Shown piece by piece: positions 15,501 through 18,500 of a DNA stretch of 64,000 bases. Below the pieces are notes generated by a model, which did not search any database, was not told the DNA's origin, and worked only from the letters and a program-made list of their open reading frames with translations. Both the position numbers and the translations under genes were made by a program. Origin of the DNA: Macrostomum lignano (lineage: Eukaryota); contig NIVC01001225.1 of assembly GCA_002269645.1 (NCBI GenBank), positions 36,943 through 100,942 of the forward strand, given 5' to 3'. Numbering within the stretch: position 1 is the first letter of the stretch; every line of letters begins with the position of its first letter.

Positions 15501-18500
15501 CCCCAGGTACATTCAATTATCCCCTGTTACAGGCACTCATCCCCTAGTTATACAGGCAATTCTTCCCCATTTACAATCAATTATCCCCTGTCACCCCACA
15601 CCAACCCCGTCCCCCAGGTTCGCGCCACAGCGGAGTCCAAGCTGGGTTTCGCCCAGGTGACAGTGCAGGTAGACGACACGAACGACAATCGGCCAGTGTT
15701 TGTGAACCGGCCCTACAACTCTATCATGTTCGCTGGTCAGCCACTTGGCAGCGTGGCGCTAATCGCGCGCGCTATCGACGCCGATTCGGGCGCCAACGGA
15801 TTGGTGCGATACGAGTTGCGCAATCATCATTCGGAATTCTGGATTAACGCCACAGGCGGCCAGGTGTACACCAGGAAGATTATTGAACAGCCGGCCGTGT
15901 TCACATTGGAACTTCGGGCTATCGATGCTGGATCGCCAATTCAACAGTTCAGCACGGTGGCGGCCACAGTCCAGGTGGTAGCTAATAACACCCCTGTGTT
16001 TCCCAACGGCTCAGTCACCGTGTCAGTTAGCGAGTCGCTCCGGCCCAACTCTGAGATTTTCACTGTGCAAGCCGAGGCGCCCGGCTCTGCCACGCTAATC
16101 TATACTATTGAGAGCGGCAATGTTGGCGAAATGTTCTCGTTGGATTTTCAAACTGGTGAGCGCTATAATTGTTTTACTGTTTACTGTATATAGTACATGC
16201 TTAAACCTACCTGTGTCTCTGTGTGTTGTCCGCATTATTTTGGCTCTCTCTCTATCACTCTGTCTATCAGGTAAGTATATCCGCTCCGATGCTATGTAAT
16301 AATAGTTTAGCTAAGCTTAGGCCACACAAGAGCTTAACATCACTGACAACAGCGACTCCTTGGACACTCTTACTTGGTAAACACTGCTCTGGCTGAACTA
16401 TAAAAGCAGCAAGCAGCAGCCTTTTGAGTTGTCCGCTTTTGTGCAAATATCTGTGTATATGTATGTATGTATGGATGTATGTATGTATTGGTAAATATTG
16501 TATGCCTTGCTCTATATTCAAACTGCTAATCTGTGTGCGTGTGTGCGTTTGTTATTCACCGGTGCGGGGCACTATTTGACCTGCGGCTTGGCTCTGACGT
16601 TGTGTGCAGTTTTTTTGCGTTTGTGTGTGTGTGCGCGTCCTAAAACCTATCAGCTAATCTCTTCTCTGGCAATAGCTTAGTCTGTGTGCAATAGTAGCAG
16701 CTTATATAATATAGTTTATTAGTATTATCTCTGTATTTGCGTAGGCGGCTCGTCTGTTTCTTTACAATGATAAGCGCAATTTTTTACTCTATGTTGGTAG
16801 AATAGAAACCAACTTGACATTGATTGAAGAAACCCGTTGAAAATGTTACTTTGGCAAGAATCGCGAAAGAGTCTTTGCAAACAACTCATAAATTGACGCA
16901 TGAATAGTATAGCATGAACTTTTTATTATTAATGCTTGTCATTACGTTTTGCATTTTAAAAGGAGATCTGTTTTAAACAAAAAAATCGCATGCGCTCTGG
17001 CTGCCAAACCCCTCAGTTCGAACGCTTAGCGCGGCATCTTCATATTTAGCATCGTTGCATTAATATTTACAATACTAGCTAATTATTTTACTACTTTATC
17101 ATCAAATTTTGTTTAATTTTCGCAGCGCCGTCGAGAAATGCAACGCCGAATTTTGGTAGGCCGTCCCCATCGATAATTTTGCTCTCTATTTATATTTTAC
17201 TAGACACAAAAACCGAACCCACATCTTTGAAACACATCTCTGCCTGGTGCTGCTATGCTTTTCATTTTGAGCATTTCTTTGCGGTTGTTGTATCCACTCT
17301 CTGGTCTATCACTCTTTAGCCTGCATCTATTGTATTGAGCTTCTTCTGTCTCTTATTCATTTTTACACCGGTTTCTCGAGAGCACTCACGTATGTGTTTA
17401 TAAAGAATTGTGTTTAGCAGGTGTTGCTATGGAGCTCAACTACTGTCTGTCGGCATTTTTCTGTGATGTCGAAAACAACCCTATTGTAGAATTTCATTTT
17501 TTGTGGACAAGTTTTATTTTTTTATTTCATTTATTAGACTTTTTCTTCATTTTTTTATAAGCATTAACAAAAATTGAATTTTATTACCCTTCAGCGAGCT
17601 CAATTCTTCAAAACCTGTTTAGACCTACCTTTGCCATTGATACGCTTGCCTTAGTTAATGTTTAGCGAAATGGCTGCTGCATTTTGGTGAATTACTCTAT
17701 GGTAGATTTTGCATTTTTACACCCACCCTTTTTGTCATGGTAATTTGCAATTTGATTGGAGCATTCCTGATCCCAACTCTGCCACTGGTGACGCAACACT
17801 TGCATATTATCGTAGCTTATACCCATTGGCCCAGCTCCTTCTGCCATTCTGTCTGTCTATTTGTCTGTCTGTCTGTCTGTCTGTCTGTCTGTCTGTCTGC
17901 CTGTCTGTCTGTCTGTCTGTCTTAGTGTCTGTCTGTCTGTCTGTCTGTCTCTCTGTCTGTCTGTCTGTCTGTCTTAGTGTCTGTATTTCTGTCTTAGTGT
18001 CTGTCTGCCTGTCTGTCTGTCTTAGTGTCTGTCTGTCTGTCTGTCTGTCTGTCTCTCTGTCTGTCTGTCTGTCTGTCTTAGTGTCTGTATTTCTGTCTTA
18101 GTGTCTGTCTGCCTGTCTGTCTGTCTGTCTTAGTGTCTGTCTGTCTTTCTGTCTGTCTGTTTGTCTGTCTGTCTGTCTGTCTGTCTGTCTGTCTGTCTGT
18201 CTGTCTGTCTGTCTTAGTGTCTTAGTGTCTGTATTTCTGTCTTAGTGTCTGTCTGCCTGTCTGTCTGTCTGTCTTAGTGTCTGTCTGTCTGTCTGTCTGT
18301 CTGTCTGTCTGTCTGTCTGTCTGTCTGTCTGTCTGTCTGTCTGTCTGTCTGTCTGTCTGTCTGTCTGTCTGTCTGTCTGTCTGTCTGCCTGCCTGTAATA
18401 TGTCAATCTCTGCCTGTTTGCTTCAGCCAATTTCTGATGGTAAAATTTAGTATTGAAAAAGCGAAAAGCACTGCCGCCCTCTCTATCCCGCATGAATCTG

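Follow-up and report, generated by a model that had tools for sequence, protein, structure and literature searches.

A ratchet-like splice motif near the start of the longest intron of a Macrostomum lignano Fat-like protocadherin gene

Recursive splicing at zero-nucleotide ratchet points has reportedly been found in the Drosophila genes Ubx, kuz and luna, in work by Hatton in 1998, Burnette in 2005 and Duff in 2015. In vertebrates, recursive splicing through RS-exons is said to occur in CADM1/2, NCAM1, ROBO2 and others, following Sibley in 2015 and Blazquez in 2018. The vertebrate recursive sites lie deep within introns of hundreds of kb, and they are defined through the donor of the downstream RS-exon. 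Stochastic, low-frequency splicing at intronic AGGT in human is likewise said to have been described, by Wan in 2021.

The Drosophila system is the most sharply delineated. Its recursive introns are 11.3-133 kb long, the segments removed from them measure 2,596-63,580 nt, and its ratchet points carry TT at positions -6/-5 in 99.5% of cases, with a conservation far above that of other intronic AG|GT (10.1101/006163). Their recognition goes through a cryptic exon, about 50 nt long, that has a donor of its own, and the motifs show ultraconservation (PMC8605326). The human AGGT surveys cover introns with a median length of about 4-10 kb and allow sites at least 50 nt from the intron ends (PMC10156609; 10.64898/2026.09.10.750672), and the 2026 human survey, a preprint by Bass & Salzberg, finds a slight excess of recursive sites close to the edges of introns (10.64898/2026.09.10.750672). 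In the literature searched, recursive splicing is not reported for any flatworm, in agreement with an earlier note on this DNA that knew of none.

We analysed a window of 64,000 nucleotides of M. lignano DNA, the final 64 kb of locus L005 (a window coordinate is the L005 coordinate minus 19,121). The product of its + strand is a giant Fat-like protocadherin, in which cadherin repeats are followed by laminin-G/EGF modules and a transmembrane segment, and 12 exons joined by hand remain open for 2,054 amino acids without a stop. Among database matches, the best is a UniProt entry from Macrostomum lignano whose sequence is the same over the exons, and the window's own annotated protein cluster, P0184/P0303/P0304, was retrieved with a longer query. 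Mapping P0304 exactly onto L005 gave a gene model with 21 introns, each with one unique GT-AG solution. The gene is present in three copies, on NIVC01000332.1, NIVC01002455.1 and NIVC01001225.1 (the contig of the window) of assembly GCA_002269645.1 (Mlig_3_7), a number that is expected because the sequenced DV1 line has three paralogous subgenomes with an SNP divergence of about 2.2% (PMC10733133).

By this mapping, exon 5 of the window, which is exon 10 of the annotated model, occupies 15618..16155 on the + strand. It encodes cadherin repeats that terminate in ...FSLDFQT+G at phase 1, and its 3′ end reads ...TTGGATTTTCAAACTG|GTGAGCGC..., with 16155 as the last exon base. Exon 6 (30380..30501, + strand) starts with (G) and 11 residues and finishes the cadherin repeat that exon 5 opens. 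The phase 1 intron between them, 16156-30379, is 14,224 nt long; it is the fifth in the window, the tenth in the annotated model and the longest of the 21. The homologous introns in the other two copies measure 13,621 and 13,261 nt, and the identity of the intron between gene copies is 92-97.5%. The average intron of the M. lignano genome is 1.1-1.4 kb long (PMC5730564). The annotated donor, CTG|GTGAGC (16156..16161, + strand), scores 9.6 bits, which ranks it at the 71st percentile among 48 real donors from M. lignano, and the annotated acceptor, TTTTTTTCTATCATTTACAG|G (30359..30379, + strand), scores 11.7 bits.

A direct junction from 16155 to 30380 is found in the annotation of all three gene copies and in an independent UniProt model. 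This junction is RNA-supported in all three copies, because the GenBank annotation of GCA_002269645.1 was built from RNA-seq-guided transcript assembly (PMC5730564). A distant homologue, P0001, aligns without a gap over the exon 5-exon 6 junction, and no intron ORF of at least 70 amino acids has a Pfam match. A hidden exon inside the intron is ruled out by the gap-free homologue, the three annotated proteins together with the UniProt model, and the Pfam-negative ORFs. Productive splicing joins 16155 to 30380. Direct and two-step splicing give identical mRNA, so that neither this final junction nor the DNA can tell the two pathways apart.

The candidate site lies 115 nt into the intron, where CTCTCTCTCTATCACTCTGTCTATCAG runs up to 16270 and is followed immediately by GTAAGT at 16271-16276 (in the window, ...GGCTCTCTCTCTATCACTCTGTCTATCAG|GTAAGTATATCC, with the AG ending at 16270). 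Its pyrimidine tract, 16244..16267 on the + strand, has a pyrimidine at 20 of 24 bases. The composite site CAG|GTAAGT, 16268..16276 on the + strand, is the full complement of the consensus U1 pairing register, as follows from the established 5′ splice-site consensus. The site divides the intron into a putative first segment of 115 nt from the donor to the candidate AG (16156..16270, + strand), a length that falls among those of ordinary short introns in M. lignano, and a remainder of 14,109 nt (16271..30379, + strand) with microsatellites and no recognisable coding sequence. The exon 5 frame extends 12 codons into the intron and stops at a TAG (16191..16193, + strand; ORF 15657..16193), which would be met on intron retention or on plain-donor use of 16271. 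The earlier note had described this arrangement correctly: its exon end at 16155, AG end at 16270, GTAAGT at 16271 and intron end at 30379 are all present in the sequence, its placing of the site 115 nt inside the longest, 14.2-kb intron agrees with the exact mapping, and the ORF bears out its statement that use as a plain alternative donor takes in the in-frame TAG at 16191.

We quantified the strength of both halves of the site with donor and acceptor matrices trained on 48 exactly mapped M. lignano introns, 21 of them in this gene and 27 in a cadherin gene on L006 that is unrelated to it. Scored by leave-one-out, real donors have a median of 8.1 bits (interquartile range 6.1-10.2) and real acceptors, whose pyrimidine tracts are short and weak in this training set, a median of 5.8 bits (interquartile range 4.0-8.6). 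The candidate acceptor scores 7.2 bits, at the 62nd percentile of real acceptors, and the candidate donor before splicing scores 12.9 bits, at the top of the real-donor range. When exon 5 is joined in silico to 16271, the regenerated donor CTG|GTAAGT scores 11.9 bits, at the 94th percentile of real donors; the claim that it is better than the annotated CTG|GTGAGC thus holds on species-trained matrices (11.9 versus 9.6 bits).

By its donor, its acceptor and its length, the 16156-16270 unit resembles a genuine short intron, and the L006 cadherin gene often has introns 67-201 nt long. It contains an AG-free stretch, 16194-16268, that forms a 75-nt exclusion zone ahead of the candidate AG. Because its donor, acceptor and length are in the genuine range and this AG-free zone precedes its AG, the spliceosome might well use the 115-nt segment. 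A canonical branch motif is absent from 16156-16270, and many real M. lignano introns likewise lack CTRAY or TTAAY. The idea that RNA structure hides or presents the site is unsupported by a 201-nt fold, which is less stable than its shuffles (z = +1.7).

Some of these measurements speak for a genuine two-step mechanism, an explanation that we consider unlikely. In it, the 115-nt segment would be taken out first by intron definition, soon after transcription, as zero-length-exon recursive splicing; the GTGAGC donor would be swapped for the stronger GTAAGT, which would then await the acceptor 14.1 kb downstream, or the two abutting introns would be removed in either order. Both halves of the site lie within or above the range of real sites, the regenerated donor exceeds the annotated one, 115 nt is a normal M. 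lignano intron length, and the candidate AG has its exclusion zone. The host intron speaks for two-step splicing too: at 14.2 kb, where the average is 1.1-1.4 kb (PMC5730564), it is the longest in a long adhesion gene.

The score of 12.9 bits also bears on a competing alternative 5′ splice site. U1 would bind the 9-mer at 16268-16276, and some transcripts would be spliced from 16271 to 30380 while keeping the 115 nt; with the premature TAG at 16191, they would be unproductive and decay-liable, or would encode a truncated ectodomain. The unspliced site is at the top of the real range and nearer the acceptor than the annotated donor is, the in-frame TAG is confirmed, and a second intronic CAGGTAAGT at 51267 (GT at 51270), which is without any pyrimidine tract, indicates that strong decoy donors are tolerated in this gene. 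The extension, however, is in none of the three annotated models and not in the UniProt model, with the caveat that decay-prone isoforms are under-represented in assemblies, and the kept 115 nt would remain a removable intron. We regard such an alternative donor as improbable.

The acceptor half of the site has its own rival, a spliced-leader trans-splice acceptor that would give an internally initiated transcript. In M. lignano, 38.8% of genes are trans-spliced (PMC5730564), and the candidate has an acceptor-like tract. Against this stand the stops within 30 nt in the relevant frame, with nothing coding after the AG, and the lack of an annotated gene boundary at the site, which leave a trans-splice acceptor scarcely credible.

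Set beside the known systems, the candidate shares the architecture of a Drosophila ratchet point and departs from it in dimensions and context. Like the fly sites, it juxtaposes a pyrimidine tract with YAG|GTAAGT (CTCTCTCTCTATCACTCTGTCTATCAG|GTAAGT), regenerates a donor on ligation to the upstream exon (in silico), has a host intron (14,224 nt) longer than the 11.3-kb fly minimum, and belongs to a long developmental/adhesion gene. Unlike them, it would produce segments of 115 and 14,109 nt, the first more than 20 times shorter than any fly segment, and its positions -6/-5 are TA rather than TT, a preference that may be fly-specific. It also has no GT of at least 4 bits within 205 nt downstream, the nearest being GAT|GTATGT at +206 with 4.6 bits. 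The lack of TT at -6/-5 and of a nearby cryptic donor for exon definition counts against two-step splicing. As to the high conservation of the fly sites, the candidate's core is kept in three subgenome copies, in an intron that is itself 92-97.5% identical.

The candidate resembles vertebrate RS-exon sites in lying in a long cell-adhesion gene and in having an AG|GT with a regenerated donor, and differs from them in its intron of 14 kb, its distance of 115 nt from the donor and the lack of an evident RS-exon donor. With the human AGGT sites (Wan 2021; Hoppe 2023, PMC10156609; Bass & Salzberg 2026) it has in common a pyrimidine at -3, which is usual among them; their conservation is weak or absent. 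Unlike those sites, which are defined by reads, it is known from DNA alone, and species and phylum differ. The nearness of the candidate to its donor is not disqualifying by itself, because the human survey finds the slight enrichment at intron edges (10.64898/2026.09.10.750672). It is also like cryptic (pseudo) 5′ splice sites or tandem alternative donors, as it is a consensus donor shortly past the authentic one that would cause a premature stop if used. It is unlike them in being adjoined by an acceptor-like tract and AG, so that the 115 nt would still be removable and the error corrected.

We quantified how often such a motif occurs by chance in several ways. The 9-mer CAGGTAAGT has four copies in the window, all on the + strand and none antisense; the copies at 13736 and 31440 are real donors, and those at 16271 and 51270 lie inside introns. 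A further CAGGTAAGT in the middle of L003, proposed as an extra intronic site, was rejected as it is the exon 7 donor. The expected count of AGGTAAGT is 1.8 for both strands combined, and four copies are reached in 11 of 100 shuffles.

The strand distribution of the 9-mer would suit an intronic U1-binding site that aids the long intron without splicing, by reinforcing the nearby authentic donor or by suppressing premature cleavage/polyadenylation (telescripting). Complementarity between the 9-mer and the U1 pairing register is complete, the intron at whose start the 9-mer stands is ten times as long as the species average (PMC5730564), and both intronic CAGGTAAGT copies are sense. Two sites, however, are too few for a strand bias, the sense strand has fewer pseudo-donors scoring 8.1 bits or more than the antisense strand does (11 versus 20), and the authentic donor 115 nt upstream already binds U1. 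A role of this kind appears highly doubtful.

A census of composite sites in the interior of all 21 introns, 52 kb in total, counted each AG|GT in which both halves score at least the lower quartile of real sites. It found two on the sense strand, the candidate and GCTGCAG|GTCAGT at 18880, and nine on the antisense strand, three of which lie within one tandem repeat. The antisense site at window position 41060 (7.7/11.9 bits) was judged equal in strength to the candidate (7.2/12.9 bits). The earlier note had named, next to a lack of intermediate or lariat reads, AG|GTAAGT tracts of equal strength that are as common on the antisense strand or in intergenic DNA as a finding that would speak against its proposal. 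With the species-trained matrices, the antisense strand does show this, with one equal at 41060 and antisense composite sites outnumbering sense sites by nine to two; the proposal of two-step splicing is weakened to that extent. The other long introns of the gene (11.5 and 9.9 kb) contain no comparable composite site.

When the 52 kb of sense-strand intron interior in this gene were shuffled with composition kept in blocks of 50 or 200 nt, about 8% of trials produced a site as strong on the matrices as the candidate. A Drosophila-style criterion (YAG|GTRAGT preceded by 24 bases with 19 or more pyrimidines) was satisfied in about 0.9% of trials, with 0.008-0.009 sites expected per 52 kb of sense intron, and this rarity supports two-step splicing. 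By the same pyrimidine criterion the candidate has no antisense equal in the window. On the + strand only 2.1% of 24-nt windows are at least 80% pyrimidine, and of the window's 18 YAG|GTRAG sites, both strands counted, the candidate has the upstream tract richest in pyrimidines. Low-threshold composite sites number two on the sense strand versus 4.7-4.9 expected from shuffles; they look, if anything, depleted there, which makes the lone strong survivor stand out. The motif exceeds chance only mildly, and is unusual for one gene. Genome-wide, dozens of chance instances are expected, because the intron total is some hundreds of Mb (calculated, Table 3 of PMC5730564).

The sequence of the tract and its state in the three gene copies bear on how the motif may have arisen. 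Tandem Repeats Finder resolves the tract as two tandem copies of the 12-mer CTCTCTCTATCA (16246-16269), and its (CT)n has 4, 5 or 6 units across the three gene copies. This length-polymorphic repeat DNA is a further point against two-step splicing. An origin from a dispersed repeat or transposon is unsupported: window positions 15601-16800 match each gene copy only once, and the tract is a local two-copy 12-mer.

Position -3 is C in the window's copy and T in the other two (TAG|GTAAGT). The core AG|GTAAGT is unchanged in three of three gene copies, as two-step splicing would have it. We used the antisense composite sites as a neutral yardstick, and their AG|GT is kept in all three copies at five of seven independent sites. 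Retention of the candidate across copies is no sign of constraint, because neutral antisense sites are retained equally often in an intron that is 92-97.5% identical, and this equality too counts against two-step splicing. Beyond the three copies, exon 5 was the query of an exhaustive search of representatives; giant multi-repeat cadherins flooded the matches, and no orthologue from another Macrostomum was among them. Exact-ORF look-ups for exon 5, exon 9 and P0064 gave no match, and none of three homology searches gave a match of intermediate identity.

The motif is real, and it is probably fortuitous and harmless. What indirect evidence there is speaks rather against a ratchet point of the Drosophila type that is under selection, and our preferred reading, which we hold at about even confidence, is that the motif is a fortuitous, selectively neutral look-alike of a ratchet point. 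In it, a perfect U1-type 9-mer, CAGGTAAGT, stands directly 3′ of a duplicated pyrimidine-rich 12-mer (CTCTCTCTATCA twice), in low-complexity DNA at the intron's 5′ end. Since the candidate AG is transcribed long before the distal acceptor, its pairing with the donor at 16156 would be kinetically favoured if the AG is competent. The two may then occasionally be paired, and the ligated CTG|GTAAGT would be respliced to 30380; alternatively, splicing from 16271 to 30380 may come first, and the 115-nt remnant would be removed as an ordinary short intron. Because the mRNA would be the same by either route, the motif would cost nothing and would not be removed by selection. Nor would it usefully shorten the long intron, because 14,109 of 14,224 nt remain; a 115-nt step that leaves the intron effectively unsubdivided is likewise an argument against two-step splicing as a function of the site.

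The case carries a caution: finding a textbook AG|GTAAGT in intron DNA rich in repeats is no evidence of recursion, and none of the controls applied here (species-trained matrices, antisense counts and the retention of neutral sites) lifts this motif above background. If two-step splicing were nevertheless true of it, it would give flatworms, and Spiralia, their first described case of recursive splicing, and it would be an unusual ‘donor-upgrade’ variant, in which a short step exchanges GTGAGC for GTAAGT near the exon rather than subdividing the intron. M. lignano is tractable to transgenesis, which makes use of the site directly testable; if the site is used, recursive splicing would reach a third animal lineage.

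On the sense strand of the Fat-like protocadherin gene, we found another composite site, with an acceptor AG directly abutting a donor GT, within the same intron 5 that holds the candidate site CAG|GTAAGT (16268-16276). This site, GCTGCAG|GTCAGT (18874-18886), lies 2.7 kb into the intron, has acceptor and donor scores of 7.0 and 9.0 bits, and is identical in sequence across all three gene copies. It is nearer in position to classical ratchet points than the candidate site is, and its donor is the weaker of the two. The antisense strand carries a composite site as well, ...aagcaatgacag|GTAAGATG (41049-41068, minus strand), which scores 7.7 and 11.9 bits and matches the candidate in strength on the species-trained matrices; in copy L003, its AG is replaced by AC.

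A second intronic CAGGTAAGT is located on the plus strand at 51267-51275, within an annotated 428-nt intron (50885-51312) whose acceptor is 37 nt downstream. It has no preceding pyrimidine tract, and its acceptor score is -2.5. Across the other copies, the motif is unaltered in L003 and reads GTAAAT in L004. This CAGGTAAGT is a strong decoy donor that is tolerated on the sense strand. Elsewhere on the plus strand, a tandem acceptor, CCCGAAG|GCCCAG|GT (31823-31836), offers two choices. The annotated one, 31829, adds Ala-Gln; the alternative, 31835, is 6 nt downstream, is also in frame and yields an equally good cadherin motif.

Intron 4 holds a tandem repeat on the plus strand with a 20-nt period and about seven copies (consensus CCCAGTTACAGGCAATTATC; 15443-15588). 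When gene copies L003-L005 were pooled in a BLAST run, this repeat matched at several offsets, and we suspect that its number of repeat units varies between the gene copies. Long pyrimidine-rich microsatellites of the (TCTG)n and (TCTA)n types occupy 3348-5822, 17848-18396, 21229-21776 and 24642-25642 on the plus strand, in every case with the pyrimidine strand as the gene's sense strand; at 4-6 kb, the AT skew is as low as -0.74.

The annotated proteins of the three copies all differ at their C-termini, and all three C-termini are apparently faulty. At 54333-54336 (plus strand), within the first EGF-like module, the window copy reads CCCC, versus CCCCC in both other copies. The missing C shifts the frame, and consequently P0304, the annotated protein of the window copy, loses the reading frame and has neither the EGF nor the transmembrane part; both can still be read from the window copy in frame 53947-55530. 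The shorter run is either a homopolymer assembly indel or a genuine frameshift in a single, redundant copy. In the protein homology searches, matches were at most about 1.75 times as long as the query (up to 734 aa with a query of 420 aa, 2,506 with 1,440 and 4,120 with 2,354), and the window's own proteins (3,627-3,874 aa) were recovered only with the 2,354-aa query.

The cadherin gene is followed by a small gene in the opposite orientation (60542-62870, minus strand), which encodes a protein phosphatase inhibitor 2 domain (IPP-2, PF04979). The IPP-2 gene also adjoins copy L004; the copies share their flanking genes, with IPP-2 on the downstream side. The three cadherin gene copies each lie on their own contig of assembly Mlig_3_7 (loci L003, L004 and L005), and their long introns differ in length by hundreds of bases; intron 5 measures 14,224 nt in the window copy (L005) and 13,621 and 13,261 nt in the other two. 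This arrangement fits the description of the DV1 line as carrying three subgenomes.
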